NCBI GenBank assembly: GCA_044892525.1
Contig: CM097885.1
Coordinates: forward strand, 207,762,001-207,826,000
DNA: 64,000 bases
From: Schmidtea polychroa
Taxonomy: Eukaryota
Direction: 5' to 3'
The position numbers and the translations under genes were made by a program. The notes below the pieces were generated by a model that did not search any database, was not told the origin of the DNA, and was given only the letters and a program-made list of their open reading frames with translations. Positions 20,991 to 58,966 of the stretch are shown one piece after another; the first letter of the stretch is position 1; every line of letters starts with the position of its first letter.

Positions 20991-21008
20991 TGGTGAGCCC
21001 GACGTGAT
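20991..21008 (+). promoter_or_regulatory. Primer-binding site, tRNA-Trp
   Basis: TGGTGAGCCCGACGTGAT differs by one base from the complement of the metazoan tRNA-Trp 3' end (TGGTGACCCCGACGTGAT); 3 nt after ...AACA. Confidence 0.85.
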
Positions 21009-21086: not shown

Positions 21087-22223
21087 ATGGCAGAGGAAGC
21101 TAATGTAAATGCATTTGCCAGATATCCCGCTCTGTCCGTAAAGGCATTCAGCGGTGATCCGGGAGAATTCCCAGAGTTTATGTCTGAATATTATCAGATG
21201 GCCAAAGCATATGCTTATCCAGATAATATCATGATACAAAGGCTACCCATATATTTGAAGGGGCTGGCAAGAGAAAAATATAATGACATAATAGCATTAC
21301 CAGTTGCTCAAGCACCGAAAACATGGGCCGAAATGAGAGAACAAATGACTGCTCGAATATTGCCCGGAGATGCGGGAAGAATATTTAGACAACAATTTTA
21401 TCATCGAAAACAAAATGCCAATGAACCTTTTGGGGAATTTGCACACCAGCTATCATTAATTGCCGAAAGAGCATTTGGTCCAAAAACCACATGGGCAAAG
21501 CCAACAGAATTGTTAGTTAAGGGTCAGCTATGGGCAGGACTTACTCCTACAATGAGGAACGCTCTAATATTACATACTAGTGATGATTTCGACGAATTGA
21601 CCCGGAAAGCAGTCGTAATTGAAAGCAGTTTGGAAAAGTCAACTATGTTCCTTGTAAACAGTGAGAGAACACCGGTAGAGTGTTTCAATTGCTATAGAAA
21701 AGGGAATATAGCGAAAGATTGTACCAGCAGGAAAATTATGGACAATCGCAAAAGTATACAATGTACCAAATGTGGACGGAATAACCACGGTGCGGAAAAC
21801 TGTAGAGTACAGAATTTGCAATGCGAAAAATGTAAACGAAAGGGACATGTTGCTGCAGTCTGCAAGACTAGAAGCTTTCAGAACAGCAATAATTTTAGTA
21901 CGGTTAAAAGAGATGATGTAAATTCATCAGGAAAGATAAAATGTCACGGATGTGAGAAATTCGGACATATGATGAGGTCATGTCCTCAGAATCAGAGTGG
22001 AAACACGGGTCAGTTCAATAAAAATACCGATAAGGGTAATGGAAACAAGCCTAAGACGACTTTTATGGTTAACCAGGATCAAGGGTTAACTTATCTGCAA
22101 CAACTGGAAATGGAAATCCAGGAAGAAAAGAATAGGTTGGCTAGATTGACCGACCAAGAAGGCACCATCTTTATGGTAGAAGTTGGAAGAGATGAATTTC
22201 TCAGAAAAAAAGGACTCCATTAG
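21087..22223 (+). CDS. gag: Element A Gag (capsid + four CCHC-type Zn knuckles)
   Basis: FSGDPGEFPEF...RLPIYLKGLA...RKQNANEPFGEFAHQL; knuckles CFNC..GN...DC (His lost), CTKC...H...NC, CEKC...H...VC, CHGC...H...SC. Confidence 0.93.
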   Translation: MAEEANVNAFARYPALSVKAFSGDPGEFPEFMSEYYQMAKAYAYPDNIMIQRLPIYLKGLAREKYNDIIALPVAQAPKTWAEMREQMTARILPGDAGRIFRQQFYHRKQNANEPFGEFAHQLSLIAERAFGPKTTWAKPTELLVKGQLWAGLTPTMRNALILHTSDDFDELTRKAVVIESSLEKSTMFLVNSERTPVECFNCYRKGNIAKDCTSRKIMDNRKSIQCTKCGRNNHGAENCRVQNLQCEKCKRKGHVAAVCKTRSFQNSNNFSTVKRDDVNSSGKIKCHGCEKFGHMMRSCPQNQSGNTGQFNKNTDKGNGNKPKTTFMVNQDQGLTYLQQLEMEIQEEKNRLARLTDQEGTIFMVEVGRDEFLRKKGLH

Positions 22224-25200
22224 AGAGGGCCTTCAGGAATCAGAGGATTTCCAAGATGCCCAACTCAATATAAAACTCCCACAGGATAAAGAATATAATC
22301 TCGATATAAACGTGAGAAGTCGAGCCGATAAATTAACGGAAACATTGACAAGTATTAAGCATCAAGGATATGACTTATACTTATGTGGGATAAAATTAGA
22401 GGCAAACCAAACACTTCTACAGAACGGGATACTCCCAGGTAGAGTGACGAAGCTCACAGCAAAGAGAGCACCAAAGCCAGTGGCAGTAATGGATCAAGAT
22501 AGCGTATTCTTGATTACTCAAATGGAAATAGAAAGATTGGAGGAAACTCAACAATTAACCCAGCGACTATGGTTAGAACTGCAGAAATTACCACGGGATG
22601 GACAAACTATAAAGGAAATACTTGACTGGATGTTAGTATTACGAATACCAGTAGATTTGTGGGAAGCAATAATTCCACTTATACTACCAGTGGTAAAGGA
22701 AACAAGCCCATTCCAGACGCAAATCGAGGCACTGATGAGGAAAAATGGGAAAGCTATTCGAGGTCAGCCTCATAGACAAGGCAACATTAATCTAGACATG
22801 CGAATGATGGGAAAAGAACCATTAACAATGATTTATAATTGTTATATCAAGGTTAAAATATTAAGGATAGATGTGATTGCCACCGATCAAACTACAGGTA
22901 TATTCCTGATAATGGTCCACGGTAGGCAAGTGGATGATGATGAATATCTAGTGGATGTGGGTTGTCTACCGTTGGCGATAACCACGGTAATGATCATCCC
23001 AGTAACTCCACCAGAGTCCCAGTGGTCATTAATGAGACTGCCAGATATAGCAAACGAAATTGCGGAAGAGATCGAGGAAATAAGGCTAGAGGAAATTAAT
23101 CCCTGTCAAATGGTTGACATCGACGAGGAAGATTACTTCTCAGAGTACGTCAGATTAAACCCAGGAGAAACAAACGTAGGAGCTACTACGTCACAAGCGG
23201 TAACAAATCCGGAGACTGAAAAACCCCCGGAGAAAGTGAAAAAAGATGGACGAGGACGTCCTAGAAAGGATCAAATGAAACCTCCACCCAAGGAGCAGTT
23301 AAATCCGGAAACGATTCGGAAAATTCAGCTAAAAACATTAGCAGGGATAGCTCAAGAAATGGACGACCAGGCGGAAGATGAAACAACGCCAGAGAGGTCG
23401 TTATTGTGGCAACGTATACAACAAATGATCGGGATCATCAGGCCCGAATGGAGAATTCCAAAAATCAAGGGTATCGAAGTGAAAAAGATAATGAAGGAGG
23501 TCAAGAAGACAATGGATAGAGTATCCAAGTACGTATCGACAGGAGATATCCAGGAGGCCATAGAAGCATTCGTACAGCAAGGATTAACAAGAGGGAAAGT
23601 GGTAACATCGCTATCATTGTTAATTCAACAGGCCTTAGCCCGAGTAGGGGACGATAAAAGGCTTATAGAACGAGAAATCGATCAAATAGTCGAAATGGTA
23701 GATTATTACATGGAGGCATGGATGACCGTAAACAAATTTTGGGAAAAGGAAATGATCCCAAAACCAAGATACGAAGCCGTGGAAGAAGCCATAAATAATG
23801 GTAGTTCAGGCACAGGAAACATGACAAGCATGATCCTGATGTTCCTAGTAATGATGGGTATACTAAAACAAACAAATTCACTAACAGTATTCGACTGTGG
23901 AAATCCTAAACTATCTCGGATATATTCGCTAGTAGATGCAATTGAGTGCAAAGAGGCGTATCCAGAGAAGGTTCATCAAGGGGAAAAGGTAGAATATTAC
24001 GTCTACCAAGAGAGTGAATTTTATAGAACCACGATAAAGGAATGTAGAGTTCAGAGAGCTACATTCGAATATTATTGCGGTACTAATAGCTATTCTGCTT
24101 TTCTATCCGCAACATTAATACCAAGGCAGGTAAACATAATGCCCGAAGATTGCTTAGATGCATTTGTGAGGATAGACAACGAGGTATCAATCTCAGCAGA
24201 AATTTGGAAAACATTGGGAATAACAATCACTCGAGGAGGAACAATTGCCTCAGATGGAACCTGCGAAGGTAAAAAGAAAATTCGCGGTAGCAATTTAGTT
24301 TCCTATGTGGTAGACATAGAAGATTACTCAGTGGAATTACGAGAATACGAGGGAACATTCGATGTGGCCACAGGAAAATTGATGGCACATCCGCAATGCA
24401 ATGCCAAGTTCGGTAGTTGTAAAACGGGAACCACCACATTAATTTACGAACAAATGAGAGATCATTGTGAGTTGGCTTTCCTCAAGAAAATTCCTTTTAG
24501 AAAATTAAATGGAACTAAATATCGGGACTCCCAGAATCCAGAAAAGGTTTGGGATAAAGCAAAAACGTTGAAGAAAATCAACAAACAAGAGAAGGAAGAT
24601 ATCGGGGAGGAAAACACACTTTTAATGCTGATATCGGAAGACAAGACGGAAGCAATTCGATTTGTCCGAAAGGATAGAAAAACTAAATGTGGGAAAAGAG
24701 TATACGAGACGAACTACAAAGGAATTCTCCTGTCAAGAGAATATATTCGGAATTCCAAGATCCTACATGTAAAGGATATCAAAATCACGAATTATATAAA
24801 TAATAAAGTAGATTATTTATATCATGATTTGCAAGGGCAAATGCAAGATATGTATCAAGAGGTGATACTAAACGATTGCAAGCTAAATCGTGAAATAGTC
24901 CGAAATAGATTAGCAATATCTATCGTTAACCCAGAGTTGATTACTCCAATGTTATTGGAAGATGGAATGTTTGGTAGAATCATGGGAGAAGCTATATATA
25001 GCTATGAGTGTAAACTAGTGGAAGTACAATTAGCCAGATTTAATCAATGCACTCTAGAACTGCCAGTGTCTTACCAAGGAAAATTGAGATTTGTTATGCC
25101 AGTAACCAGAAAGTTACTTAAGGAAAACACTAAACCTCAACCAGCTATATGCAACCCGGCAATATCACCATTATACAAAATAAATGACATGTGGATATCT

Positions 25201-28200
25201 CTGCCGGAAAGAAAACCATCTACACAACGGGTAGACATCTTGGAGGTAACTAAATAAGAGGATAATCTGGAATTCAAGTCACTAGACGAATTAGCAAAAG
25301 GAGGGATCTATACTCCCGACGATATCGAGGAAGCAAGAAGGACATTGCTATTCCCACAAATCAGAGACAGAGGTATCACGGAAATTATAAGAACAATTTA
25401 TCATGATAGCTTAATACGACCAGATTACAATCTATTATTTGGACCGGAACACTATAAAGAAGCAGCAAAGAACGTAATGATGAAAATATGGGGACGATTT
25501 ACCAATTTTGGTATTTTTGTCGCTGGATGTTCAGGAATTTACGCAATATTTGTAATTTTAAAGCTGATAATTACACAACTGATGTCAAAATATAGCATAT
25601 TCAAAATTGGAGGATGGTCATGGAAACTGCTATTAGGACTATGTCCTATGTGTGCAGAGTTTGCATTATTCAAACATCACAGAAAAGAAATTAAAGAAAT
25701 TAGACAGAAACATTTGGTCAAACATGAAGTAATTGGAACAGAAATGGAGGAGTATTCGAGTTATCGGGACGATAACAATTCAAAGGGAGGATGTAATGGA
25801 GGCTCTCGTGGAACATCTTCAAGATCAAATCAATCACGAAAACAGAACTACAACAAAAAACCGATTCTGCAACAAAGAAAATCGAGATTTAAGGAATATC
25901 TCCCTCCATATGACCAATCAAAGGAAATTTACGTGAAAAGACAGTCCTCAGAAGGAGAATATGACAGTTCCGACCAAAAATTCGACAAAAGGTCACCCAG
26001 ATTCAAGAGAAGTCCAAGATATGTACAATTGCCAACTTTGAGGAGTTTACCATCCGCACCAAACGAGGGGCGGGAACATTCAAGGGAAACAACACTCAGA
26101 ACAGGACGACACCAATGGAAAATCGGTGAAGATATCATATTTAATAATCTGACATGTTCAACATTGCCAGAATTACCTAAAGTGCACTATCCAAAGGAAG
26201 CGTTAGAGTCAATTAAAGCTAAATTTAAAGAATATAATCCTCAACTGAGTGATCCCGAATTACTGGAAGCAGAACAAACGAGAGCCAATACAATCAGTAT
26301 CTCGCACGATACTATCTTGATGGTCAATAACCCAGTGAATTTGGATAAAAAGCCAATGATAAAAATAAGAGTGAACCGACATACAGTTAATGCGGAGATA
26401 GACTCAGGAGCAAATGGTACCATAATTGAAGCTAAATTGTTAAACCATCATGAACTGCAGTCGCTAAAACCGGCAGGAGTAAAATTAACAGGAGCAAACG
26501 GATCCTCATTAAACGTAATAGGGTCATTATCCTGCCAGATTAAGCTATGTGACCAGGAGCTCCATCACGACATCATAGTGATGAGAAGTCTCCCAGCCGA
26601 ATGTCTATTGGATATGGACATCCTAAAAAGACTACGAGGAGTAGTATTCGATTGTGCATCTGGATTGTTAATCCGACCACGAGGTAAAAAGAGAAAAATT
26701 TACAACGATGATACAGCTTATATAGATCATACAACTGTTATACCACCCAGAGCGGAAACAGTATGTTTTGTAGCTACAAGCAATAATTGGGAAGGTGAAA
26801 TTGTATACGAACCAGACGAAATATTTTCGGAGAAATACAACATACCAGTTACTCATAGCGTAGGTTTAATAGTCAATGGCAGAATACCAATCAGGGTAGC
26901 CAATCTGGACATTAAACCACTTTACTTATATCCAGATACCAGAGTTGGCAAAATCTGGAAACAAAACGAACCACAAGCCACGGGAGAAGGGTCGATACTT
27001 ACCATAAAGGCAGAAGAAAGAGATCCAGATATTGAGTACTACGATGCACCTACAGCAAATAGCAAAGTGCTAACCAGAAAAGAAAACATTCAAGTAAATA
27101 TGCTATTGAGGAAATACGACCAGGTATTCCCAAAACATGAATACGATCTGGGAAAAACAAACCTGTTAGAACATGAGATTGTTCTCACCAATACAAAACC
27201 TATAAAGCTGAGACCATACCGTATTCCATTCAGTCTGGAGGAATCAGTAGAAAAACAGGTGAAATTGATGTTAAAACATGGCATAATCAGGCATAGTAAA
27301 TCACCATATCAATCGCCAATGATAGTAGTGGCCAAGAAGGATGGATCAGTACGATTATGTAATGACTATCGCATGGTTAACGAAGCAACATGCAAAGATA
27401 GCCATCCATTGCCATTGTTAGATTATATCTATGGACGCATGAGAGACGCTAGGTTCTTCTCAGTAATGGACGCCCAAAAGGGATTTTATCAAATTAAGTT
27501 AAAAGACGAGACTATACCAATAACAGCGTTCTCTAAGAGTATGGGTCATTACGAATATAACGTAATGCCATTTGGACTCACAAGAGCTCCAGCCACATTT
27601 CAAAGAGCAATGAATTTGATGCTCATGGATGTACATCATGCGATGGTATACATTGACGACGTCATAGTATTCTCGCCAAATTTGGAAAAACACTTGGAAC
27701 ATTTGGAAGATGTATTCAAGAGGTTGATCAACGCAAACATGAAAGTGAAACCAACCAAATGTAAATGGGCTGAACCAGAAGTGGTATATGTTGGCCATAT
27801 CATATCAAGAGACGGGGTTAAACCCGATCCAGCAAATGTTGAAAAGGTAAAGAATTTCCAGGAGCCTAAAACCGTTAAACATATCAAAGGGTTCTTAGGC
27901 CTAGTTGGATACTATAGGAAATTCATTAGAAACTTCTCGGTTATAGCTTTTCCACTCACGCAGTTAGAAGGCAAAAATGTCAAATTTGTGTAGAGAACAG
28001 AACAGCAAGAAGCATTTGATATGCTCAAGGAAAAACTCGTCAAGCCACCTATATTGCGATTTCCAGACTTTGAGAGACAATTTTTGGTTATGACAGATGC
28101 CAGCACTCGGGGCATAGGTGCTGTGCTAGGTCAAAGAGATGCAATTGCATACGCTAGCAGAGGATTAAAACCACACGAGAGAAACTACGCAGTGATAGAA

Positions 28201-30807
28201 CTAGAGGCTTTAGCAATTGTGTATGCTATAACCCAGTTTAGAACTTATCTTTGGGATCGAAAGATCATAGTGTACACCGATCATAGACCATTACAGTGGC
28301 TGACAAAACACACAATGGATACATCAAAACTAGTCAGATGGGCACTAATTTTACAGCCATAGGACATAGAAATCCATTACAGAAAAGGAGATCACAATGG
28401 TAATGCAGATGCTTTATCAAGAATGGACCAGGAAGAAGAAGCAGAAGATGTGAAGGAAGGACGTCTCGAAGGGACTATCTTCACACTATCTCGAGAAGCC
28501 AACCGGCTAGCTGATTTAATGAAGGCACAAAAATCTGACGAAGAAATCAATGTTATTCGTCAAGCCTTGGAAGCAAAATACGTGCACACAGAATTCACGA
28601 AATACTGGGAAAAGAATAAAGACAAATTTGTGCTGGAAGAGGGATTAGTTAAATATTCAGATGTAAGAGATAACGTTATAATGGTTCCTAAGAAATACCG
28701 TGAAGCACTCATGTTGCAGTATCACGATGGAGCCTTAGGAGGCCACATGTCATCTAGAAAAACATTGTCGAGGCTAAAACAGAAATATTTTTGGCCAGGT
28801 ATGAAACAAGACGTTAAAACCTGGTGTCAGACATGTAAGATCTGTATCACCAGAAGAAATACCGGAAAGAAACCACACGTACCAATGAAGCCGATGCCAG
28901 TACCATCTACACGTATGGAAATGACGACAATGGACGTGTTGGGGCCATTCAAAGAATCTAATAGCGGAAACAAGTACATATTAGTTTTCTGCGACTACTT
29001 GACTAAGTGGCCAGAGGCCTACCCGATGCCTAATCACAAAGCTGATACAATAGCTAGAATTTTCGTTGAACAAATTGTCTTTAGGTATGGAGTGCCTACA
29101 AAGTTATTAACGGATCGGGGAGCAGATTTCATGAGTAATTTGCTCAAAGGAATAAATGATTATTTCGGAGTTTTAAAGTTGAATACTTCCCCATATCACC
29201 CACAGACGGATGGGCTAGTAGAACGATTTAATGGAACATTAGCTAATATGTTAGCATCATATGTAAATTCAGGGCAAACGGACTGTGATATCCACATTCC
29301 ATCCTGTTTATTTGCATACAGAAATGCAGTGCACGAAGGAACAGGTGAAACACCATTTTACCTAATGTATCTAAGGCAAAGTAAAATGCCGGTAGATCTG
29401 TTGTTTTTCCCTAAAGCCACACGGTACTTGGATCAGGAAAATTATCTGATGGAAATGAGGGAAAGAATGCAGGAAGCATGGGCTAGAGCAGGTCTCAGTA
29501 TAAAATATAATCAGGAAGCATCAAAAGATTATCACGACCGAAAAGCCAAGGATCATGGCATATTGGTTGGAGACCAGGTGATGTTAGAAAGTCATTATAA
29601 CAAGAAAGGCTTATCACCAAAACTCATGCGAAATTTCAAAGGGCCATATGAGGTATTGAGAACCACAGATACAAATCTCATATTACAACTTGTAGCCAAC
29701 AGAAAAGCAGAACCAATAATGGTGCATGCTAATCGGTGTAAAAAGTGCGAAATCTCAACAAAAGGAACCTCTGGAAATTCAAAAGTAAAAGCACCAGAGA
29801 AGCAAGTGAAACCAAATACTACCGAAGAACCACAAGAACACCGATACCCATTGAGATCACGGGGTGTTCCAAAATCGGTAACCTTTTTGTTGATAATAAG
29901 CTGTATGATGACTTTGGTGATGGCAAAAAGGGATAAAAAGGCATATTTTCAGCCTATGGCAATGCAAGTGGAACATTTACATTTTATAAGAACGTATCAC
30001 GGAATTAGCATACTCACAACGTGCGATAATGCTAAAAAATTCAATTTACATTTCTATAACAAGTACCTGCGGATCCGCCAACTCAATTCAGAAGAAAAAG
30101 AGTGGGAATTATATGATTTAAAAGCAGAGACGGATTATAAACTGCATATCGCAGCATCAAGGTTATATCAGAGCGGTTGGTATACCTATCAGGTATCAAA
30201 TTGGATCCTAAGGACGGCGGATTTCACAAATCGCATATCGATATCCTACGAAAAAGATAAAGTGAAGTTTAGTCAACAAATTAGCAGGGAGGAGAAGGTG
30301 AAAGTCAGTATTCTAGACGGACCAACCACGAGAGAAACATTATGGCTATACCAGAACTCTCCCTCCCAAGAAATGTATCTAAATCAGTCCGTAGAATATT
30401 CGGTTCTAGTTATATACTATAGTCCGAGGAAACGGCAGGACGATAGGTGGTTCGAGGTATTCGAGGAGATATTACCTCTTAAACAGCCAGTTATAACGAA
30501 GATACCACCAAAAGTAGTCAGGGAGAACATGGTGATACATCCCGCGATATGGCAACATCTTAGACAGTTGCCACCTATCAAACAAATATCTTGCCAATAG
30601 ACCCCAAACCTGACAAACTGTTGTGATTGTAATGCCATCACGAACTTTAATGCAGGATACATTCTGAAAATACCCATAAGGGTATGGATTACGGTATCGG
30701 CCGTACTATCGCTAATAACTACACTGATAGCTATCAGTATTTGGACCAAGCTATATTTTAGACAAGCCATAAGGGCTTACGATGGAGTACTGATGTCGCA
30801 ATTATGA
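22183..30807 (+). pseudogene. pol: Element A polyprotein: 2x Ubl, AT-hook, Bcl-2-like, signal, class III-type glycoprotein, TM, protease, RT, RNase H, integrase, signal, FN3-like, TM
   Basis: One reading frame broken only by stops at 25255, 27991, 28360 and 30598. Motifs: GRGRPRK; LTVFDCG...YCG...DGTCEG...GEAIYSYEC; IDSGA (26401); YIDD (27649); TDAS; HDG..GGH/C..C; MDVLG; TDRG; ERFN; DLKAETDYKL. Confidence 0.9.
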
Positions 30808-33869: not shown

Positions 33870-34196
33870 TGTTGAGCTGAGCCGAAAGATAGCTGGGAAA
33901 TCAGGTTAAATTTAACTAAAGAAAAATAAAAAATAAAATAAATAGATCGAGGAATAAAATAGAATAGAACATAAGAAAAGTAATAATTAGAAAATAAGAA
34001 TTAAAACAAAAAACATAAAAATAAGAACAATTAAATAGGACAATAGAATGACGAAAAATAACGTAAAAGGTAGTAGATAATAAGGAAATTAAGGAAAATA
34101 AATAAAAACATAATTTTAATAAAGAAAATAAGAAGAAATAACCCAAAAACAAGGAAAATAAATTAAATGAATAAAATAAGGCGGTACTCAATTCTG

Positions 34197-34229
34197 ATTG
34201 GTCCGCATAAACAAAAAATACCTATATAA
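34197..34229 (+). promoter_or_regulatory. Candidate LTR promoter (inverted CCAAT box + TATA box)
   Basis: ATTGG at 34197-34201 and TATATAA at 34223-34229; the same motifs occur in the 3' LTR. Motif match only. Confidence 0.45.
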
Positions 34230-36416
34230 GTAAGCAGCAAATTCACTATAATCAATGTTAAAATCAAACCAATTATAGGTACCCGACAATCAGGAAAACC
34301 AAACCATACTCAGACAACTATTAGGGACAGTTTTATAGACTACTCATTCATATAACCGATTGGATCAGTTTATATTTCGGCTCAGCCTTTGGAACTACAG
34401 AATTTTTCAAATAATAAAGTAAGGATGTATTGCTATTATGAAATTTGTTTTTGAAGGATTTAAATATTTCTATTATATTAACCTAACTTTTGAATAAAAA
34501 CTTCTCCATTCGGTTTCGATCTTTTAACGATTTTATGGTTCATAAATTAATTTACAGGTCAATGATATATAAATATTTATGTTATGTTTTGTCATCAAAC
34601 GTATTGATTATGCTAAAATTATTTGTTTTGAGAAACGTGGAGTTGAGGAGACCCACGCCATGGTATGAGGAGCCTTCGGGAGCTCAGCCGGCGGGTGTGG
34701 ATCTCTTCAATCACGCAGCTGACGTGGGCCGGAATGTGGGGGCTTCCTCACGGGTCCGTCGCTGAGGGAAATAAAATGCTGCAAGCACGAGTTTAAAGTG
34801 TAGAGGAATATATTCCAATATTGAAAAGTAGAGCAAATCTGAATTGAAAATGACTGAGGTGGCTACAAACTCTTCCAAGTATGAGAATCTCATTTTCTTA
34901 GGTACTATACTTTGAAATTTTCGTCTAACATCATGAATTAGTCTCGATCGACTATTCACTTCCATGATACTCTATCATCTTGCGATAAATCCCCTTTTCG
35001 TCAAAATTCATGTCAATTTTCATCTTAACTGATAGAACCCAAGAGCTAATACATTCACTCTGATGTTATGCAGTAGTATAGGAAGTATATATGGAAGATC
35101 ACTGAACGCTTTTATTTACTAAAAAGATATTTGGAGGAGTACGTTATTGTTTTTATCAAAAGCGCCTTAACTCTTTCTGAAATCCCCAATAGCCGTAATC
35201 TGAAGTCCGTTCAGTAAAAGACCCTCTGGCCTCATAACACAGTAAACATACAAGGAGAATTTACAAAAGTATTTAATTAAAAAGATAAAATTTCGTAAAA
35301 AATTCTTTATTTTCATTAAAAAAAAAATATAATTCTGAGTTACCAGTAGTAGGAGCATAATAATCATTTCGGGAAGTTACCCCTGATAGATGTCGCTAAG
35401 ATGAGGAAGGGCTTGAGCGAGTTGATAAAATCTCCACCGGACAGGATATTCTGATGTAAAGCGAGAGAGGCAGTATAATAAAAAATTTTTTCCAAATTTT
35501 CGTGTTTGCTGAGAACTAAACAGTAGATTCATATCGGAGCTGAATGATTAAATTCCAAAAATCGATGTAATCCAAGTTCGGCAGTATAGATAAAATATGA
35601 ACATGTACAGTGAGAAGGTATAGTCTGTCTGTAAGTATGCAGTGAATGAGATTGAGCAATCACCTGCAGGTAGAATCACATGTACAATAGCGAACAATTG
35701 CATATGGCTTAGTCGATGTGATACTCATGCTGCCGGTACGGTAGCAGTGAATTCACAATTTAATCATCGATAATGAGAAAGTCGAATCCCATTGCACACA
35801 CATGGTGAACACCAACTTTTCTGAGAGATCTGAACACTAAGCCAGTTAACGAGGAGGCATGCAACAGATGGTTTGCATCATACGTGTCATACAACTAGAA
35901 TAGAAATTAGACTAGTCTAACTTATCAGCAGTGTGATTGATCAAACAGAGCAAAGTCCATTTGACTGTAAAGTTTTTGTAATCGCACGCATTTACAATTA
36001 ACTCAAATTAGAGTATTATAATCACGAATAAACTCAAATCTTTTAATTAATTTATTATCCCGATGTATTGCACCTGTCTGAATTGTTTTGCTGATAGTAA
36101 AGTCGAATCTGGTCACGCTCATGTATTGACAAGTTTTCTTAATCCGCAATAAAATTATCATGTTGGGCAAAAAGGGGGGGGGAGAATTAATTTGTTAACC
36201 CGTAAACCTATAATTACTTTACGGATGTAATATCAATCAACAGGAAGTTTCGCTAACAGTCATTCCGTTTTCTTCTTGTCGGTCATTTCAACCCATGAAT
36301 GTAATGTAGGGAATTTATGAGCCTTAATAAATAATTACGCTACTCTGATGGATTAGTAGAGCTAGCCAATTTTCGTCTTATCTCTATTATTCTTTCTTCA
36401 TTATAGCTATCAAAAG

Positions 36417-37160
36417 ATGTTGCCAAGCACGAAATCGCCCATCAAACCCTGCTTCTCCTGCTCGGACAAAAATACCGTAATCCGAGAATTACAGGCCCAG
36501 ATCGGTCGATATAAAAAGAAGATCGACGATCTGGAAGGTACATGGTTTAGCCCAGTACAAATGAAGGAAGTTCAAAAGAAATTGTACCGCAGTGAGCATT
36601 GTCGCGATGCTTTGATAAGCGAAAGTAGAGCTCAGCGTAGCCTAATCAAAGAGCAGTCCGAAGCTCTACATAAAGTTTACGTTCAAGCCGCTACAACCCG
36701 AAGGATTGTTAGTATTCCGATTAAAGAAGCGGACAATGTCTTCCCCGTTCACCATGAACCTTCAGTTAGTTCGCCACCCTTGTCGAAAAGATCTTGTCAG
36801 GAATGTGTGGAGGCCGACCTCTCCCCCAGGCCATCGGACGTACCTACTACCGGCACTGGCAAGGTATTGCATTCAGCCACGACGTCCTCGGCAATCTTGT
36901 CTGCCAACCCCTCAAAACCTAAGCGCCGCCAATTGTCCAGAGCGGAGCGTAAGAAGCGCCAACGTGAACGAGCAATGGTCAAACAACGAGAACTATCTGC
37001 CAACCACCTAAGTGCTTCGAATGATCCACCCGTAACGATCGATCTGACCGTAGGAATCCCAGGGCGAATCATATCTGCCGCTGGTGTGACTTGGGAGGAG
37101 AATGCCTCCGAGTTTTTTGATCTAGATGAGCTATTGGCGGATGCGGGGTGGGAGAAGTGA
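36417..37160 (+). CDS. LTR-encoded 247-aa protein (coiled coil, basic NLS-like patch, acidic tail)
   Basis: Intact ATG-TGA ORF that is more GC-rich than its surroundings; polypyrimidine-TATAG acceptor 10 nt upstream; AATAAA at 37291. Confidence 0.75.
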   Translation: MLPSTKSPIKPCFSCSDKNTVIRELQAQIGRYKKKIDDLEGTWFSPVQMKEVQKKLYRSEHCRDALISESRAQRSLIKEQSEALHKVYVQAATTRRIVSIPIKEADNVFPVHHEPSVSSPPLSKRSCQECVEADLSPRPSDVPTTGTGKVLHSATTSSAILSANPSKPKRRQLSRAERKKRQRERAMVKQRELSANHLSASNDPPVTIDLTVGIPGRIISAAGVTWEENASEFFDLDELLADAGWEK

Positions 37161-37738
37161 TGGCCGCAACACAATGCAACCGTGCAGGGTGCGAATGGAC
37201 AAATATACTATCTTGACTCTTTTTCTTCTTAATCTATTCTCCACCAAGTGTACTTGTTATGTAGTGTATAATTATTTAATGTATCATGATAATAAAATAA
37301 AGAAATATTTGGTTAAATTTTTGTTGTTGTTTAAATCTAACTAGCTGTGATAAAGGTTCAGCGTAGTGTTCGCAAAGCGAGAGTAAAGTTTGAGTTCGAG
37401 AGGCAGTGGTCAATTTTGTACCGAATAATGGGTCAGGGTAGAGGGAGAATCTGATGAGGTAAACAGACGTAAGTCCTTCCATCGGCCGTCAGAAAAGGGA
37501 AGTCGAGGCCTCAGTAAGGAGTAGTCCTAAGGTAGGGGCTCACCTGCTTACTGGAGTCTCGCCGACATAGCACATTTCCAACGTGAAGCAATTCGCGGGT
37601 GCTATGTTGGAGGGCAAGTTGTGCGGGGTCCTGCTCCGGGTTGACACGGGCGTATGTAGCGTAATAATATGGGCACGCACCCCTAGACAAGGACGTAGAT
37701 TGAGCAGAGTCAACCAAGCACTACCCCAGCATAATTTT

Positions 37739-37756
37739 TGGGGGCTCAGCCGGGAT
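37739..37756 (+). promoter_or_regulatory. Primer-binding site, tRNA-Pro
   Basis: TGGGGGCTCAGCCGGGAT versus the canonical Pro PBS TGGGGGCTCGTCCGGGAT (2 mismatches), 7 nt after the LTR end. Confidence 0.85.
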
Positions 37757-38011
37757 ATTATGGAATTTCTGTCGAATAATGTGAATTCACCGGGATTATC
37801 GATTTCAATTAGTGGGCGAATTAAATTGACTAATGCCTATCGAATCTTATCATAAATCACGATTAGAAAATAATAGAATTAAAGATATAAATAAAGTAAA
37901 TAATAGGGAAATAGAATAAAAACAAAATAAATTATAACGAATTAAAAGAAAATGTTTGATGAAATAACCATTAATTAGCTGTATATTATTTTTTTTTCTT
38001 TCTCAATAGAC

Positions 38012-38497
38012 ATGACGGAATTCGCAGAACAGATGCAACAATTAATTAATTTCATTAATATAGAAAACGACCCTATTAAAACACTCATACAAAAAGGAAA
38101 GCGAATCAACAGCATTTTACTCCAAGCAATCGGACATACACCAGTCGTACCTAACCACGTGTTATTGGCCGCAGGTTTAAGCCACTCAGATGAAAAGATA
38201 AATCACGAAACAGTATACCAATGGTACCTAAAACGACTAAAAAACCCGGCCCTAAATCTAGAATACGAGCGAATAAAAGATCAACTACATACAATATCAG
38301 AGGCAATCGAACAAAAGATACAAGAGAAACTCACCAAATTGCGAACCTGTCTGTCTTGCAATCTTCGCCCTATACGCATACTATTTTTACCTTGTGGACA
38401 CCTCAGTCATTGTGAAGAGTGCGTGAAAGATCTGAAACGATGTGCAATATGTAAAAATGGGATAAAAGAAACCCATATGGTTTATTACGGTGATTAA
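38012..38497 (+). CDS. IAP-type C-terminal RING finger protein without BIR domain
   Basis: RTCLSCNLRPIRILFLPCGHLSHCEECVKDLKRCAICKNGIKETHMVYY at the extreme C-terminus after a coiled segment, as in cIAP/XIAP; strong acceptor upstream, AATAAA downstream. Confidence 0.9.
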   Translation: MTEFAEQMQQLINFINIENDPIKTLIQKGKRINSILLQAIGHTPVVPNHVLLAAGLSHSDEKINHETVYQWYLKRLKNPALNLEYERIKDQLHTISEAIEQKIQEKLTKLRTCLSCNLRPIRILFLPCGHLSHCEECVKDLKRCAICKNGIKETHMVYYGD

Positions 38498-39057
38498 AAC
38501 GACTAACCAGATGCAGTGATGTATATGCGCACTAAATTGTTAAAAGACCTTTGAATACGAATATATGTACTTTTAAGTGTGAAATAACTTTAATGTTTAA
38601 TTTTAGTCTCAGAATAAATAAAAATTTTTTGTTGTTATGAATTAGATATTTTATCTCTTTTAATTATATCTTTGGTTATGAGATCGAATGGAGAAGAATA
38701 AAACTAACGTGGAATTAGTCCCAATATAGGCTGCAGGGGTACAAACCGAGCCACCTTCGGGCGGTACGTTTTATTGCAAGAACCCGTTGGGAGGGGATAA
38801 CTGATCAACCCAAGTAAGAAGCGTAGGGCGGGGTACCATCGCATATGATGAGAAGTTTCTACGACATGACTGATCACCATGCCAATGTAGAAATGGATCA
38901 TCGCGATCGTCGTGCGTTTTGAGCAAGGGGGGAAAGGGGAAACACTCTCAAGCGGTAAAGATTAAGTCGACAAATTAAAAGTAGACAGAGAAAATGGTAA
39001 TCTTGAGTAAAAGAGGAAAAGAGAAGTAGAAGCATGCAGAGTGAGGAATATTAAAGC

Positions 39058-39579
39058 TGAGCTGTTGAATAGTCCAGCCGGTCAAGGAAAATGAAAACTG
39101 AGCTGTGAAAAGTCCAGCCAGTTCGGAGATATTAAGATCGAGTTGTTGAATAGTCCAACCGATCAGAAGGAAGAAGATTGAGCTGTTGAATAGTGCCAGC
39201 CAGTCGTAAGATCGAGTTGTTGAATAGTCCAACCGATCAGAAGGAAGAAGATTGAGCTGTTGAATAGTGCCAGCCAGTCGTAAGATCGAGTTGTTGAATA
39301 GTCCAACCGATCAGAAGGAAGAAGATTGAGCTGTTGAATAGTGCCAGCCAGTCGTAAGATCGAGTTGTTGAATAGTCCAACCGATCAGAAGGAAGAAGAT
39401 TGAGCTGTTGAATAGTGCCAGCCAGTCGTAAGATCGAGTTGTTGAATAGTCCAACCGATCAGAAGGAAGAAGATTGAGCTGTTGAATAGTGCCAGCCAGA
39501 CGTAAGATCGAGTTGTTGAATAGTCCAACCGATCAGAAGGAAGAAGATTGAGCTGTTGAATAGTGCCAGCCAGTCGTAA
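39058..39579. repeat. 74-bp tandem array (6 copies) plus degenerate upstream units, in the leader of element B
   Basis: GAGTTGTTGAATAGTCC recurs at 39140, 39214, 39288, 39362, 39436 and 39510. Each unit has two sub-repeats sharing GAG(C/T)TGTTGAATAGT. Confidence 0.97.
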
Positions 39580-40947
39580 AGGCCTAGAAAAATGAGAAAT
39601 AGCAGTTAAGCTACAATGAGATAATATTTACAATTAATAGAGAAAGGGAATATTAAAGCTAGCTAGAAACAAATTGAATATAATTACGAAAATTTGAGTT
39701 TAGAGAGGAAATAAACGAGCTCGGGGAAAAGATAATAAAATTATAATGAAAAAGGAAGGAGAAGAAGAAAATGAATTAAAGAAATAATGAGAAAATAAAG
39801 AATAGGTGAAATGGAGATAATGAGTAGAAGAAGAAAGTAACTAGCTAATTAAAGGGATCCCAGTGAAGTAGAGAAACTCTACTGAATTTTTTTTTTGGGT
39901 AAACCGGGAAAATGTATTTTTATCGGTTCCAGAGTAGAACCGAGTGGGATAATAGTAAATATGAAAAGTAAAACAGCGACAACAGCGCAAAGGAATAAGA
40001 AAACGAAGGGGGGTAATAAGCAGAGACCGACAACGACCTATTTTTACTATAATTGATAACGAATAGATAATTATTACGACTTTATAGATAATTGTTACTA
40101 CCCCATATAGATAATTTAAAATCGACGGAAAATACGGGCTGATGGGAAATTATAACCCGCAGAAAGGATTTCACAAAAGATAGGGGAAGCACAAACAGAA
40201 ACCTAAAAGGTGTCTGTTTTTGAATGTTGTAGAAAGAATGATGAAGTCGTGTAAGCAAATGCAACACGAGATCATTTTTTCATTTTAGATATCAAGCCAA
40301 TCCAGTCAACCAAGACAATCCAGAACCTGCACAAAAGGAATTCGAAGAAATCGACAATCAACCAAGGATAAATCCATTCAGAACCCGCACCGAGAGACAC
40401 AGCAACCGGAAGACTCCAGAACGGAAGAAGATACAGATAGCGACATCTCCAACTTCGAACGAATCATCGATATATTCAACCTCATAGTATTAGCAGCCAT
40501 CTGCCAAGGATTAGTAAATCTCCTCAGGATCTCAGTAGCAGATTCATACAGAATATTTATCGAAGGAAACACAATCAGAACCGAACTCGTCCAATTCAAT
40601 AGCCGCTAATTACCAAGAAGCGTAAGAAAGGAATCACGGATAAACCCAATCTTAGATCTTCAAGTAAGCCAGGAGACGTATTATTTTCAGGAGACGAATT
40701 ACAACAACTCAAAAGAGGACGATCTATTAAACATCAAAGAGGAATATCACAAGGAGCAAGAAGAACCAATCAAGTACCCATATTTGACCAAGAAAATCTC
40801 GGATATACCCCTAGTCGATCTCGAAGTAGAGAAAGTCTGTCCGATATCACTAATAGTTTAGCAACGTCAACCGAGGAATTATCAGCCCAAAGTTTAGTCA
40901 CATCGTTAGACAATTTAAAAGAAACAGACGAACCTAGAACACCAATC

Positions 40948-43152
40948 ATGACGAATGTCGTAAAAACCGACGAGTATAAAGAGAAGTTCAGAGGAGAACC
41001 GTTCAATGGAAATGCAAACAAGTTAGCAACGTTCATAACTAATTTTGAAGTTTATATCACTGTGTGTGGATGGACATCCGAAGCAATTAGTAAAAGGATG
41101 CCGTTGTTTTTGTGCGATAGTGCATTAGAAGTATATTTAGAAGCTAAAGAGAGAGACACGAAATTAGAAAAGTGGGAAGATATTAAAACATTCCTGAAGA
41201 AAACCTTCGGAGCCAGTAAGCCAATCAACCAGGCGTTGGGCGAACTAGCAAATAGGAAACAAAGAGCAAACGAATCGATAACATTATATGCCAGTGAATT
41301 GCGGAGATTAGCGAAGAAAGCAATGAATGGAAAATTACCCGAAGAAAATCTGATCGGTTATTTCATAGAGGGATTACGCCGAGAAGAAGTAAGAGCCTCA
41401 GTAGGTTGTCAAATGTGCAAAACATTAGAGGAAGCCATAGATTGGGCTACAAGATGCGAGCTCCACCTCCCAGCTCAAATAAATATTATGCAAGAAGAGG
41501 GAAGGATAGCGACAGCAATAGCGAAAGCGGATAACGGAGATAACAACAATCAAGAACCGAAAATGAATCAATTTATACCAGGAGCGCATCAAATTTTCAA
41601 ACCACCACAAGGACGATCAAATGGGAATAATGGTAATCGTAACAACCTGAATAATGAGAACAATTTTAATAATCGACGAAATACGAACGATAACAAGCAG
41701 TGCCGAACATGCGGTAAACCAGGACACTGGGACAGAGATTGCTATAGAAATTCAAATTGTAATCGTTGCGGACGGCGTGGACATACCGAAAATGTATGCC
41801 AATTGAGAGGTTGTTTTAACTGTGGTCAGCCAGGTCACATCTCCAGAGATTGCCGAGAAAGGGGCCAACAACAACGACCACCACAGCGAAATAATAATTA
41901 TATGGCGAATCCGCAACGACAAAGCAACCCTAGCGAAGGAAAACAAATGAACGTTATGCAGGAAATCTCGCAGATGAAACAGATGATGCAACAAATGATG
42001 AGGCCAAGACAAGAATCAGCACCCCAACAAACCCAGAATATACGTATGATGAGGAGTACCGAAAATCCCAACAATTATGAAGTGCATCAACATGTACAAG
42101 AATGGCAAAGGCTACAGGCCGAGGAAGAGAGGATAAAACAAGAACGCAACCAACAACGACAAGAACAACCATTGCGAATAAATATGATGAAGTTAGTAAA
42201 AGACATGAAGAGCCAGTATTGCTACAATTACGGGAAAAACCCAAGGGTAGTACCCATGACTGAACCAGAAAAGGTAAAAGAAACAACCACGGAAATGAAA
42301 ACAGAGAATTCAACCACGATTTTAAAAGGAAACCAGAGAATTCAGAAAATATTCTGGAAAAAGATAAAAGATAAAATCGAAAAAGAACATAATAAAGCGA
42401 AAACCGAGACAGAAGATGAAAATAACAAGAGCAAGGAACAAACCAGTCAACTAAACCACCAAATGCTACAGGAATTAGAATCAGAAGAAACAACGATATT
42501 TGAAAGAAAGAAACTAAAGAGAGTACCAAGGATGAGAAATTTGCAAATCAATATGATGAAAAGGACAAAAGATGTAGCATCGTCAGACGAAGAAGAAGAC
42601 TATGTAAGTAGTTTGGGTGGAGAAATACTACAGCTAAATGAAATAAGCGAACCTCCAAAAGGGGAAATCAAAGAGGAAGAAAGCGAAAGCGAGATAACCA
42701 GTGGAAGTGAAGACGAGGATGTCGAAATAAAGTTGAGAAAAGCAGGGGAGGAAGCGATAAAACAGCTAGCCGAAATACTCCCAGTAGTAGTGAGGAACCA
42801 AGAGTTCATCGACGTAATTCCATTCAGGCGATTCGTGCAAAAAGTGATGAAATTGGAAAGAAACGAGAAAGATCTAATACCAAACGAGGAAAAATCAATT
42901 ATAAAAAAGTATATGGAAAAAATGAAGCAGGCCGATACCACGCGGTATGTAATAAAAATTGGAACGAGTAGAGGACTTGAAAGAATGTGGATAAAAAATA
43001 CAGTCACCGACGAACTTTTCGATTGGATACGAGAACATTTGGGAAGTTCGAGAAAGAAAGAATATCTGTATCAATACCAAGGTGAACAGATCAAACCAGA
43101 TATGCACTTAGTAGATGCACTGAAATGGCCAGGAAATACTGAAGTTGCATAA
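40948..43152 (+). CDS. gag: Element B Gag (capsid, three CCHC knuckles, Q-rich and acidic extension, C-terminal Ubl-like domain)
   Basis: FNGNANKLATFITNFE...RKQRANESITLYASELRRLA...FIEGL; CRTC..GHWDRDC, CNRC..GHTENVC, CFNC..GHISRDC. The frame is open upstream to ~40603. Confidence 0.95.
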   Translation: MTNVVKTDEYKEKFRGEPFNGNANKLATFITNFEVYITVCGWTSEAISKRMPLFLCDSALEVYLEAKERDTKLEKWEDIKTFLKKTFGASKPINQALGELANRKQRANESITLYASELRRLAKKAMNGKLPEENLIGYFIEGLRREEVRASVGCQMCKTLEEAIDWATRCELHLPAQINIMQEEGRIATAIAKADNGDNNNQEPKMNQFIPGAHQIFKPPQGRSNGNNGNRNNLNNENNFNNRRNTNDNKQCRTCGKPGHWDRDCYRNSNCNRCGRRGHTENVCQLRGCFNCGQPGHISRDCRERGQQQRPPQRNNNYMANPQRQSNPSEGKQMNVMQEISQMKQMMQQMMRPRQESAPQQTQNIRMMRSTENPNNYEVHQHVQEWQRLQAEEERIKQERNQQRQEQPLRINMMKLVKDMKSQYCYNYGKNPRVVPMTEPEKVKETTTEMKTENSTTILKGNQRIQKIFWKKIKDKIEKEHNKAKTETEDENNKSKEQTSQLNHQMLQELESEETTIFERKKLKRVPRMRNLQINMMKRTKDVASSDEEEDYVSSLGGEILQLNEISEPPKGEIKEEESESEITSGSEDEDVEIKLRKAGEEAIKQLAEILPVVVRNQEFIDVIPFRRFVQKVMKLERNEKDLIPNEEKSIIKKYMEKMKQADTTRYVIKIGTSRGLERMWIKNTVTDELFDWIREHLGSSRKKEYLYQYQGEQIKPDMHLVDALKWPGNTEVA

Positions 43153-46100
43153 AGAAAAACAACCAGCCAACCTTTACGATTGGGCTAAAGATGCCAAGGC
43201 AGAATATGATTTTAATATCAAATTGAAATTAGAACAAATAAAACAATGTACTCTGAGACGAAACCTGGATAAGCTGATCAAACAAATTCAAGAACAAGTA
43301 GAAGACAACTGGGATTTACTCATCACCAGACGAGCCCCAGCCATGTACGAACTAATGAGCCGGTTGCGAGATACAGAAATGCTCCGAATGAGTGATTGGA
43401 GAACCATAAATTTGATCCACAAATATGGAAGGTTAAAAGAAACCCAGCCACAGAGGTTGGAAATAACCATATGGTTACCGAACGAAGAGAAACGACGAAT
43501 AAAAATGAGCAATCAGAGTACAGTAGATGACTTGGTATCAAAAATAAACCAAGAGATAACGGAAAAGGTACGTAGCGAAAGTAGTGATGGTATGGTGGAT
43601 GATGTAGTCATGATGTACGATAAAATAATATTACGAGCGGAGGACGACACCTCGTTAAGCGAAATGGGTATGTGGGACAATCATCAGATAATCAGGATAG
43701 TACCAATGGATGAATTCCGAACAAGAGATGTAACCTATCAAAAAGAAATACGAGACCGGATGAAAACGTTATATCAAAAATCTACAGAAATAATTGAAAT
43801 CCACCAACAATGGTTAAAAGAAAAAGAGCTACAAGGAAAAATCACGAAATTAAATACCAGATCCTGCAGACGAACCCCATGGGAAAGAGTGTGGAATGCA
43901 GAAAATAAGGAATGGGAAATCCGGAAAGGGATCTTCGTAGAAACAGACATTGGTGAGACAGAAAGTGAATCGGAGGAAGAAGAAGAGGAATTTCCAGAAT
44001 ATGAAGAGGAAGCAAGGGAACAGACATCAGATGACGAAGGCGAGACGGATGTCACATCAGAAAGCGAAAATGAAGCGAGACATATTCATGCAATGAGGAA
44101 AAAGGAACGTGAATATGCTGATATGGACGGCGAGGAAGCAATAGAAGCAAGAGAGCGAGAAGAGAAAGAAAGATATAAACAATTAGGCGATATTTTAGCA
44201 ATGGGAGCGAAAAATCAAAAACGCCAGGTAGTAGCGTTGGCTAATATCATCTTAAAAACATCAGAGAATATCCACAATCTGAGAGGAATGGCAAAGGCAA
44301 TAGAGGAATACCGGCAATATAATGAATGGTATCCAGAACAGCTAGAACAAATTATTCGAAAATGGAGAAATCAGGAATGGGCACAAGACACTCAGGAGAG
44401 GTATCACATCCGAATCAAGTATCCGGACAAGAGCATCGAGGAACTAGAGGTACATCCAACAACAAAAATTAGAGAATTAAAAAAGAAATTAGCATATGAA
44501 ACTCCATTCCATCTGCAACTATTCGGAAAATCACTAGACGATAATGCAGACGTCGGGATAACACCCATGAGATTGGAAGAGACAAATGTATTAACAATGG
44601 CAGAAACGTTGGGGAAACCGTTAAAAAGGAAAAGTAAAATTACTAAACCAACAAAAGGCAGTTTGAGTACTCCAAGTCCGAACAAAGCACCAAGTAAATC
44701 TAATGAAACTGAAGAAGTTGAAGAGATCATCCTGGAAGATAGTGACGATGAACCAGGAGAAAGATCACCGCTATTAGTGAGATGGCCGACAGGAGCCGAA
44801 ATGTGGACTAATAACCAGCCATCAACGAGTTATCAACAACCAACGAAACTGAACATCAAAGAAATCATCGACAATACTACGGAAACCGAAACGGATGAAC
44901 AATTCCAGAAGCAAAGAGAACCAACGAAAGTAACACCAGAAGGTCAAACCGATAAAATAATAGACGAATGGAATGAGTGGCTAAGAAATAGCGATAGCTC
45001 ATTACCCAGAACGGATAACGAAAGAAACCCGAATTACGAAAATACCAGAGAAGCCGGAACGATGATGGAAAAACGGGCAAAAGGAAGACCTAAGAAACAA
45101 GGAGAAAAATCTGAGTTCAAAACCAAAGAACAATTAAAGCAAGAACAAGGGCAAGTTCGATTAGAAAAATTGGATAAAATAGTATGGGATCTAAAGGAAG
45201 CCCAACCAACGACCGAAAGAGGAGAAAAATGGATACGAGAATTGATCAAAGATATGTTAATAATAACAAACCCACAACTTAGACGTTCGTGGCAACGGAA
45301 AGTAGCCAGCACGGAAGCTAGACAATTATGGCACACCATTTCGGGGATAATCCCAAAGTTAATCAAAGAGAAAACGAAAACCACCAAAACGGATTGGGAC
45401 GAAACAAAGAGAGTGATTGAGCAGCTCACGACAAATGCAAATGATGACGAACATCATCTAGTGGTAATCACGTATTTGATGTATAATTTGATGGGACTAG
45501 CTGCGAGGAAAATACCAAATAAACAGTTTGCAAATCATGTGGAAATGACCGTTTCGATCATAGAGAATACTATTGAACCACATATTATTCGTGCAGGAGG
45601 ATGGAAAAGACTGATACAAGCGCCACGAAAAAATGAGCAAGAAAGGTCGATGCAAGTTAGATTGAAAAAACTGTTAAATGAACTAGAATGGGAACTACCG
45701 ATGAAAGATCTCGCAAGCAGAAAAGCATCAATAAATTCGTTAATGATGACTATGATGATATGGATGTTGTGCACCAGTGGAGCAACGGGTTTTACCATCT
45801 ACGATTGTGATAATATGATAATGAGAGATAAATACTCATTGAGAAACATAGAAGAATGCAGACAAGCCTCACCCAACAAATTGGACATCGTGAGAACAAA
45901 AGTTACTTACCATGTATATCAAGAATCAGATTTCATCAGAACGCAAGCAAGGGAATGCGTAGTATCAAAAAAGGTACTCGCATATTACTGTGGACAATAT
46001 TCGTATTCGACTCTTATACTACCCGGTCTGGATAAAGAAATCGTATCAATACAACGAGAGGACTGTAAAGAGCTATTTAGAACCGGAGCGCTAAAAATGC

Positions 46101-54801: not shown

Positions 54802-54961
54802 AAAGGAATATGACTGTATATAATTGTAAAAAGTAAGTATATCTTATGTATATAACAGTACTATATCTTTATATAAGCGCGGTATCAATATTATACAATA
54901 ACGGGAATCATAAAATAAAATTAAATTTACATAAGAGTTGAAAAGTGTATATAAATTAAGA

Positions 54962-55321: not shown

Positions 55322-55406
55322 ACCAAACCTAGCTTAAAATGTAAATAATTGTAAATAAAATATCGAACCTGTATCGATAAGAACTATATGTACATATAAT
55401 TATAGA

Positions 55407-58926: not shown

Positions 58927-58966
58927 ATTAAGGGTCACTAAAACCAATTGTAAATAAACATAATGA

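Follow-up and report, generated by a model that had tools for sequence, protein, structure and literature searches.

A 64,000-nucleotide stretch of the Schmidtea polychroa genome (contig CM097885.1, positions 207,762,001 to 207,826,000, hereafter the window) was analysed. It contains two retrovirus-like elements on the + strand, called here A and B. Element A, the main subject of this report, extends from position 21087 to 30807 of the window, i.e. 9,721 nt or 3,240 codons. The much longer element B lies downstream of A and was used as the comparator. Coordinates of all features are collected in Table 1.

Layout of element A

Pfam matches along the + strand of element A follow each other in the order Retrotrans_gag/CCHC, PF24664 (a viral fusion glycoprotein family), aspartyl protease, RVT_1, RT_RNaseH, and integrase zinc and core domains. 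When motifs, profiles and hydropathy are added, the order becomes Gag, two ubiquitin-like (Ubl) segments, an AT-hook, a Bcl-2-like segment, a hydrophobic signal, the fusion glycoprotein with its anchor, protease (PR), reverse transcriptase (RT), RNase H (RH), integrase (INT), and finally a module made of a signal, an ectodomain and an anchor. This is the order that had been proposed in a preliminary description made from the sequence, and it holds from Gag through integrase; the label given there to the last ectodomain is not supported (see below). Element A is very probably a genomic copy, now decayed, of a Ty3/gypsy-type (Metaviridae) retrovirus-like element of the GAG-ENV-POL lineage, in a compact version of ~10 kb.

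Besides the terminal stop, the interruptions are one frame change at the gag end and four in-frame stops, of which pol has two, and the glycoprotein and the post-integrase module one each. These counts, like the 3,240 codons, agree with those announced earlier. The DSG, YIDD, HHCC and DDE motifs are legible in the translations, so that the enzymes looked functional until recently. A variant genetic code was envisaged as an explanation for the stops and dropped, as all three kinds of stop are present and relatives are free of them. A purine-rich run follows the last stop of A. No record was returned when public assemblies were searched for an exact match to an A protein, and a word-indexed homologue search with the piece covering the accessory segments and the glycoprotein gave a single match.

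The glycoprotein matched PF24664 (Monjiviricetes_fusion) with E values of 1.4e-50 for its N-terminal piece and 4e-12 for its C-terminal piece, and BDV_G weakly. As in B, it stands in the reading frame of pol. A sequence search against PDB gave no match for it. Its assignment to class III, which follows from membership of PF24664, is putative. Hydropathy placed hydrophobic segments on both sides of both A ectodomains, and a basic linker separates the glycoprotein anchor from pol. Between PR and RT, a conserved bridge aligns with B and with a public contig (L002); a dUTPase-like domain has been reported for the Burro elements discussed at the end of this report, and a 3-sequence profile of the bridge, searched for such a domain, matched nothing.

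Element B and its comparison with A

Element B is in all likelihood a young, 30-kb Burro-like version with extra host-derived genes; its youth is deduced from the 99.92% identity of its long terminal repeats (LTRs). Its gag-to-ankyrin span was measured at 4,618 codons, for ~4,610 in the preliminary description. Two frame changes were found, one past gag and one inside the glycoprotein, as well as four in-frame stops, all in the protease. These four stops are bunched within 48127-48500, a density far exceeding what is expected from the age of the element. Each LTR also contains an intact open reading frame (ORF) of 247 aa without Pfam match (36417-37160 and 62401-63144). In the 3.2-kb leader separating the LTR from gag, ~8 tandem copies of a 74-bp unit are present (39045-39650); the Burro figure of PMC6431247 shows tandem repeats too.

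Comparisons between A and B were made on the pieces as they stand. A continuous BLASTP alignment runs from the AT-hook through the glycoprotein, with 30% identity over 715 aa (E 5e-84). Taken separately, identities reach 37% for the glycoprotein, 43% for RT, 50% for RNase H and 46% for integrase, and 36% for the PR-RT bridge plus RT, while the likeness of the two gag proteins is confined to the zinc knuckles. The two elements are therefore only distantly similar, as had been stated. The ankyrin, TRAF and RING parts of B were not found in A with Pfam, nor does A, with 9.7 kb, have the giant size of B.

The reading frame that follows gag in A overlaps the gag end and is in the +1 frame. The shift past gag is +1 in B as well, and no frame change occurs there in four relatives retrieved from public data (P0001, P0177, P0179 and P0187; handles in P designate such proteins). 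The shift in A and B may correspond to programmed recoding, to a mutation or to an assembly error.

Table 1. Features of elements A and B and of the rest of the 64-kb window (positions in the window)
Feature	Position	Strand	Evidence
A primer-binding-site-like 18-mer, begins TGG, 78 nt upstream of gag ATG	20991..21008	+	read directly
A gag, Retrotrans_gag with three canonical and one degenerate CCHC knuckle	21087..22223	+	Pfam PF03732, PF00098; translation
A ubiquitin-like segment 1	22240..22482	+	five-segment profile
A ubiquitin-like segment 2, aligns with B segment (B: sub-threshold Pfam ubiquitin match)	22795..23037	+	
A AT-hook core GRGRPRK	23248..23268	+	translation
A Bcl-2-like helical segment	23305..23826	+	PDB profile search, AlphaFold2, Foldseek
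A short hydrophobic stretch, then small residues	23821..23880	+	hydropathy
A fusion glycoprotein (Monjiviricetes/putative class III type), anchor and proximal tail, one in-frame stop	23881..25716	+	PF24664
A pol, two in-frame stops	26344..29691	+	Pfam, motifs
A protease	26344-26640	+	
A conserved PR-RT bridge, aligns with B and L002	26707-27054	+	
A RT	27331-27804	+	
A RNase H	28024-28356	+	
A integrase zinc and core	28684-29250	+	
A SH3-like C-terminal domain of integrase	29560-29691	+	
A post-integrase module: hydrophobic segment, ~250-aa ectodomain without assigned fold, anchor, short tail; one in-frame stop	29866..30807	+	translation, hydropathy
Element B, 29,846 bp, Burro-like	33870..63715	+	
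B LTRs, 3,862 bp, 99.92% identical, TG...CA ends	33870-37731 and 59855-63715		
B target duplication, 4-bp CCTC	33866-33869 and 63716-63719		
B primer-binding-site-like 18-mer, begins TGG, 7 nt past LTR	37739-37756		
B leader ORF, C-terminal zf-C3HC4_3 RING (IAP-type)	38012..38497	+	Pfam PF13920, E 6e-11
B polyprotein region	40948..54801	+	Pfam, BLASTP vs A, hydropathy
B gag	40948-43152	+	
B ubiquitin-like segments	43442-43729 and 44387-44644	+	
B AT-hook	45080-45097	+	
B Bcl-2-like	45104-45682	+	
B glycoprotein	45797-47559	+	
B protease	start at 48127	+	
B RT	49075-49551	+	
B RNase H	49738-50127	+	
B integrase	50449-51018	+	
B ankyrin repeats	51871-53121	+	
B post-integrase hydrophobic pair	53800-54636	+	
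B accessory ORF, RING and MATH/TRAF-C (TRAF-like)	55407..56795	+	Pfam PF21355/PF22486 E 1e-26, plus RING
Ty3/gypsy pol fragment, a second one	22-1860		Pfam
Tc5/pogo transposase	8914-10515		Pfam
BEL/Pao-type matches, weak	14842-16649	minus	Pfam
41-nt tandem repeat adjoining N gap	17488-17710		
Type-B DNA polymerase ORF, adjoins N gap, directly upstream of A	18784-19944		PF03175, E 1e-9

Accessory segments between gag and the glycoprotein

Gag and the glycoprotein of A are separated by ~565 residues, a region in which Pfam is blank. A profile built from five aligned segments (two from A, two from B and one from P0001) matched the Ubl domain of RAD23B (E 7e-6), ubiquilin (E 2e-4) and ubiquitin (E 4e-3). 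With the two A segments alone, Ubl proteins were still the top three matches, although weak (E 0.012-0.13), so that in A both the Ubl and the Bcl-2-like assignments lean on the alignment with B and P0001. The C-terminal di-glycine is absent at the ends of all five segments; if these are Ubl domains, they would thus be of the non-conjugated, built-in kind. The AT-hook comes next; in A, B, P0001 and P0003 it lies 190-240 aa ahead of the point where the glycoprotein begins.

The helical segment following the AT-hook was compared to PDB with profiles. A 3-sequence profile retrieved Bfl-1 only, with an E value of 0.4. A 12-sequence profile, with A as its first row, retrieved 95 PDB matches, and the 60 listed were all Bcl-xL, Bcl-2 chimeras or Bfl-1. 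Bcl-xL was the best match (E 2e-4), across the BH1-BH2 region, and Bfl-1 was found at E 0.05. In P0001, Pfam Bcl-2 was detected below threshold (E 0.055). AlphaFold2, fed with the 12-sequence alignment, predicted eight helices and a hydrophobic tail for the A segment, with a mean predicted local distance difference test score (pLDDT) of 62, which rose to 86-90 across the ~60 residues matching the BH1-BH2 part. Homology of the A segment to Bcl-2 is likely from these matches, a Bcl-2 fold not being proven.

Between this helical segment and the conserved N-terminus of the glycoprotein lies a short hydrophobic stretch, also present in B and P0001. It could act in A both as an internal signal peptide for the glycoprotein and as a tail anchor for the Bcl-2-like part.

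A membrane module past integrase

The preliminary description had called the ectodomain past integrase "FN3-like" in both elements. This label found no support: neither FN3 nor any other Pfam family was found on the A and B ectodomains, even at an E value of 10, and the A ectodomain had no homologue among 271 retrieved proteins. What was found is a pair of hydrophobic segments past integrase in A, B and 11 relatives, with a spacing of mostly 240-350 aa (125-240 aa in four of the 11 relatives). The first segment begins ~185 residues past the integrase core in A and four relatives. No such pair was seen in six long gypsy proteins devoid of glycoprotein. Between relatives whose RT identity is ~70-77%, the ectodomains are 23-27% identical, and those of relatives had no similarity to A or B with phmmer, BLASTP or a hidden Markov model (HMM) from four relatives. 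In P0187, a sub-threshold Ig_3 match (E 1.5e-5) falls at the ectodomain position. We conclude that the position and topology of the module are conserved, and that its sequence evolves very fast.

The layout in public proteins

An exhaustive HMMER search of 1.84 billion representatives gave 1,230 proteins at E <=1e-3. The glycoprotein precedes PR-RT-RH-INT in an uninterrupted ORF in P0005, P0008, P0016, P0017, P0152, P0177, P0179, P0187 and P0232. These ORFs are 2,100-4,800 aa long, P0152 reaching 4,844 aa. P0256 has the same layout with a glycoprotein match that is sub-threshold only, and P0205 the same gag-to-pol spacing with no glycoprotein match. The ORFs of P0017, P0177, P0179, P0232, P0205 and P0256 open with Gag/CCHC; among them, P0177 (3,700 aa) has CCHC and a ubiquitin match, P0179 Retrotrans_gag and CCHC, and P0017 CCHC. 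In P0001, Gag, Ubl, AT-hook, Bcl-2-like segment and glycoprotein all stand in one ORF, the ubiquitin, Bcl-2 and AT-hook matches being sub-threshold. The proteins closest to B in RT-RH-INT (49-52% identity) either carry PF24664 or have an ORF that begins past the glycoprotein region.

The Bcl-2-like/AT-hook module was detected in A, B, P0001, P0002, P0003 (AT-hook motif only), P0004, P0010, P0021, P0050, P0102 and P0141. The architecture had been announced as family-wide. This is true of the glycoprotein placed before pol, which is seen in many intact ORFs; the Ubl/AT-hook/Bcl-2 module is detectable in a subset only.

Some peculiarities of these relatives were noted in passing. In polyproteins P0152 (L002, 6512-21046), P0003, P0005 and P0019, the aspartyl protease domain is repeated in tandem, with two to seven copies, and L002 has RNase_T exonuclease and IAP-type RING ORFs past pol. 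P0008 (NCBI HBK71150.1), a 2,627-aa glycoprotein-PR-RT-RH-INT protein, has been deposited under Flavobacteriaceae, as a hypothetical protein from a metagenome bin; it almost certainly comes from a mis-binned contig of an animal retroelement.

Origin of the layout

The evidence supports a shared, inherited genome plan, as had been proposed, instead of a chance chimera: at least twelve independent public proteins have the same glycoprotein in an uninterrupted ORF ahead of PR-RT-RH-INT, P0001 unites gag, the accessory segments and the glycoprotein in a single ORF, and glycoprotein and RT identities co-vary across 12 elements (Mantel/Pearson r 0.71, 0/5,000 permutations). Such co-variation fits co-inheritance and not repeated capture. 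Selection on the layout, for its part, would be suggested solely by the long intact ORFs of the relatives.

Several results weigh against this picture of an inherited plan with a Bcl-2-like part and a membrane-threaded product. In a neighbour-joining RT tree (100 bootstraps), the node uniting A and B had a bootstrap of 3/100, and A joined P0232/P0205/P0256 with a support of 31; B was basal to a "core" group (support 73 for the core, 33 for core plus B). Bcl-2-like and AT-hook parts went undetected, by HMM and motif scan, in 13 glycoprotein-bearing relatives having at least 250 aa upstream. No LTR pair or target duplication was found for A within the window by gapless repeats, self-BLASTN (word 11) or flank-versus-flank BLASTN (word 7), these searches returning AT-rich low-complexity matches only. 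Foldseek with the Bcl-2-like model gave nothing significant against PDB (best E 0.47), even if most of its top 50 were Bcl-xL, Bcl-2 or BOK, with local 67-residue matches to Bcl-xL at a root-mean-square deviation of 2.4 A; against viral models, nothing meaningful came out. The AlphaFold2 model of the whole 565-aa accessory region was poor (pLDDT 46). Finally, the topology and cleavage scheme proposed below would follow from hydropathy and from analogy.

The tree is what gives some ground to the idea that the A and B lineages each gained a mononegavirus-type glycoprotein together with the Bcl-2 and Ubl parts, their identical order being convergent. GAG-ENV-POL elements are likewise not monophyletic in the pol trees of PMC13524379. 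Repeated capture would nevertheless have to account for an AT-hook, a Bcl-2-like segment and a signal also shared by A and B, with the same spacing and in one continuous alignment, and for the co-varying glycoprotein and RT distances. Moreover, distant RT neighbours, P0232 and P0256, carry CCHC-glycoprotein-PR-RT-RH-INT in one ORF (with the reservations made above on the P0256 glycoprotein, and on P0205, where the spacing only is found). We regard independent captures as improbable. Still less credible is a chance chimera, be it the nested insertion of a glycoprotein fossil into an ordinary gypsy element or a mis-join of the contig. The place would lend itself to such accidents, since transposon remains, some of them nested, fill the window, which also has two N gaps, and A itself is broken and devoid of LTRs; yet B has the same junctions in frame, as do dozens of unrelated contigs from public data, and no repeat or target duplication was found around the glycoprotein inside A. 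Common inheritance of the layout is therefore retained. As to the distinct Metaviridae clade that had been postulated, Gag and the order PR-RT-RH-INT do place A and B in Metaviridae, but a clade formed by A and B is not resolved by RT alone.

Expression of the element

How would such an element be expressed? In the scheme that we propose, it would be translated as a single long polyprotein, with a frame change at the gag end in A and B and none in several relatives, and this polyprotein would thread the membrane of the endoplasmic reticulum four times. Everything from Gag to the Bcl-2-like domain, the two ubiquitin-like domains and the AT-hook included, would remain in the cytosol. The signal-like stretch would then direct the glycoprotein ectodomain to the lumen, perhaps serving at the same time as a tail anchor for the Bcl-2-like part. 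With the glycoprotein anchor, the chain would come back to the cytosol for PR-RT-RH-INT, after which a second signal-like stretch would export the fast-evolving ectodomain, closed by the last anchor. Lumenal cuts would be made by signal peptidase, and cytosolic ones by the protease of the element. The signal or anchor segments are four, an even number, so that both ectodomains are expected in the lumen and the enzymes in the cytosol, together with Gag and the Ubl and Bcl-2-like parts.

Retroviruses and insect errantiviruses make env from spliced RNA, and the ancestry retained above could be combined with a similar mode of expression: the glycoprotein and the post-integrase protein would come from spliced subgenomic mRNAs, in-frame continuity would be incidental and no four-pass polyprotein would exist. 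The frame change past gag in A and B does require at least one step of recoding or of separate initiation, and in L002, gag and the 4,844-aa ORF were called separately. On the other hand, the glycoprotein is in frame with both of its neighbours, and stop-free, in many independent ORFs of 2,100-4,800 aa, a continuity that is not expected to persist if env came from a spliced message alone; the even number of signal-like and anchor segments, which keeps the enzymes cytosolic, also speaks against spliced env. We consider this alternative rather unlikely.

The polyprotein scheme, in its most complete form, is itself put forward as tentative, and on balance doubtful. The whole element would be one membrane-threaded polyprotein with two lumenal ectodomains, a class III fusogen and a fast-evolving surface protein fused past integrase, Ig-like in at least one relative. 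The Bcl-2-like part would be tail-anchored by the signal of the fusogen, and the second ectodomain could be the receptor-binding or immune-modulating partner of the fusogen. 

Judging from their family names alone, the Bcl-2-like and ubiquitin-like parts, and in B the RING, TRAF and ankyrin parts, would most plausibly modulate host apoptosis and ubiquitin signalling, an interference already suggested for Burro by Arkhipova and Yushenova (PMC6431247).

Setting of the elements in the window

The window is AT-rich (GC 25-43%) and crowded with transposon remains, nested elements and two N gaps included. The polymerase ORF lying directly upstream of A is probably a fragment of Maverick/Polinton type, and nothing ties it to A. 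Directly past the last stop of A, within the 3 kb separating A from the B insertion, is a 139-aa ORF without family match (30934-31353), which might be an accessory ORF of A. The preliminary description gave tRNA-Trp as the primer of A and tRNA-Pro as that of B; what the sequence shows are 18-mers beginning with TGG, and no tRNA gene was detected anywhere in the window.

Comparison with known systems

Two of the likenesses that we considered serve as working analogies only. Bcl-2 homologues of large DNA viruses would be comparable to the A segment as anti-apoptotic helical proteins with a hydrophobic tail, and flavivirus-like membrane-threaded polyproteins would be comparable to the scheme above by their internal signal and anchor segments and their cuts by signal peptidase and a viral protease. 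No sequence relationship of A to large DNA viruses or to flavivirus-like viruses was found, and the genes of A belong to a reverse-transcribing element. Closer to A and B are the insect errantiviruses (gypsy, ZAM, Idefix), which also have a Ty3/gypsy backbone with an acquired viral fusogen. Their env, of the baculovirus F / class I type, is a separate ORF past pol that is made from spliced RNA. Chuvirus-like glycoprotein genes, known from arthropod genomes and BEL/Pao elements, belong to the same Pfam family as the A and B glycoproteins, but they stand alone or lie in another retroelement superfamily, and are not fused into gag-pol; among free-standing PF24664 matches of 650-700 aa are proteins of the beetle Zophobas morio that bear the name "Glycoprotein". 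Env located between gag and pol is reportedly found in the nematode GAG-ENV-POL elements of Sacco et al. (J Gen Virol, 2022), and Burro elements are said to go back to Jurka in 2007 and to Grohme et al. in 2018.

GAG-ENV-POL elements with a gB-type env occur in Platyhelminthes, Nematoda and Bryozoa, and in some of them two membrane segments flank the env ectodomain (Chary and Hayashi 2026, PMC13524379). These "errantiviruses" resemble A and B in having env between gag and pol, a class III fusogen, a signal or membrane segment plus an anchor, and an ancient divergence together with pol. Gag, env and pol are handled there as ORFs, and the Ubl/AT-hook/Bcl-2 module and a second membrane protein past integrase are not described in the accessible part of the article.

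Burro/GYPSM1 of Schmidtea mediterranea and its relative in Dugesia tigrina exceed 30 kb, with a polyprotein of ~4,900-5,100 aa (Arkhipova and Yushenova 2019, PMC6431247, section 7). The published order is Gag with two or three CCHC knuckles, Ubi2/SUMO-like, BCL2, in-frame env, PR, dUTPase-like, RT-RH-IN, ankyrin, MATH_TRAF_C and BIR (PMC6431247). Element B fits this description nearly item by item, with its mononegavirus-like in-frame env, its Ubl, BCL2, ankyrin, MATH_TRAF_C and RING/IAP-type parts, its long LTRs and its tandem repeats; the MATH/TRAF part of B is however a separate ORF past pol, and not ahead of the Ubl part. The giant size of Burro (an internal region of up to 25 kb) and its ankyrin, TRAF and RING parts are found in B and not in A, whose coding span is ~10 kb only and which has no LTRs in the window. 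The likeness of A and B to Burro is drawn from the published description.

The layout is thus already published, for Burro in 2018-2019 and in 2022-2026 for GAG-ENV-POL elements from flatworms, nematodes and bryozoans (PMC6431247, PMC13524379), and the novelty attributed to it in the preliminary description was too high. Element A adds a member to this Burro-like / GAG-ENV-POL lineage, one that is new or for which, at least, no earlier description is demonstrable. The part that may add to the published layout is the post-integrase membrane module, which is not mentioned in PMC6431247 or PMC13524379, as far as the accessible portions of these articles go. More generally, this result confirms that a widespread lineage inherits env within gag-pol along with parts related to apoptosis and ubiquitin, and that the layout is no oddity of one giant element: a compact 10-kb A and a 30-kb B are neighbours here, and public metagenome data contain hundreds of relatives. 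The lineage is now easily recognised in annotation, and it bears on how retroelements gain and retain infectivity genes.

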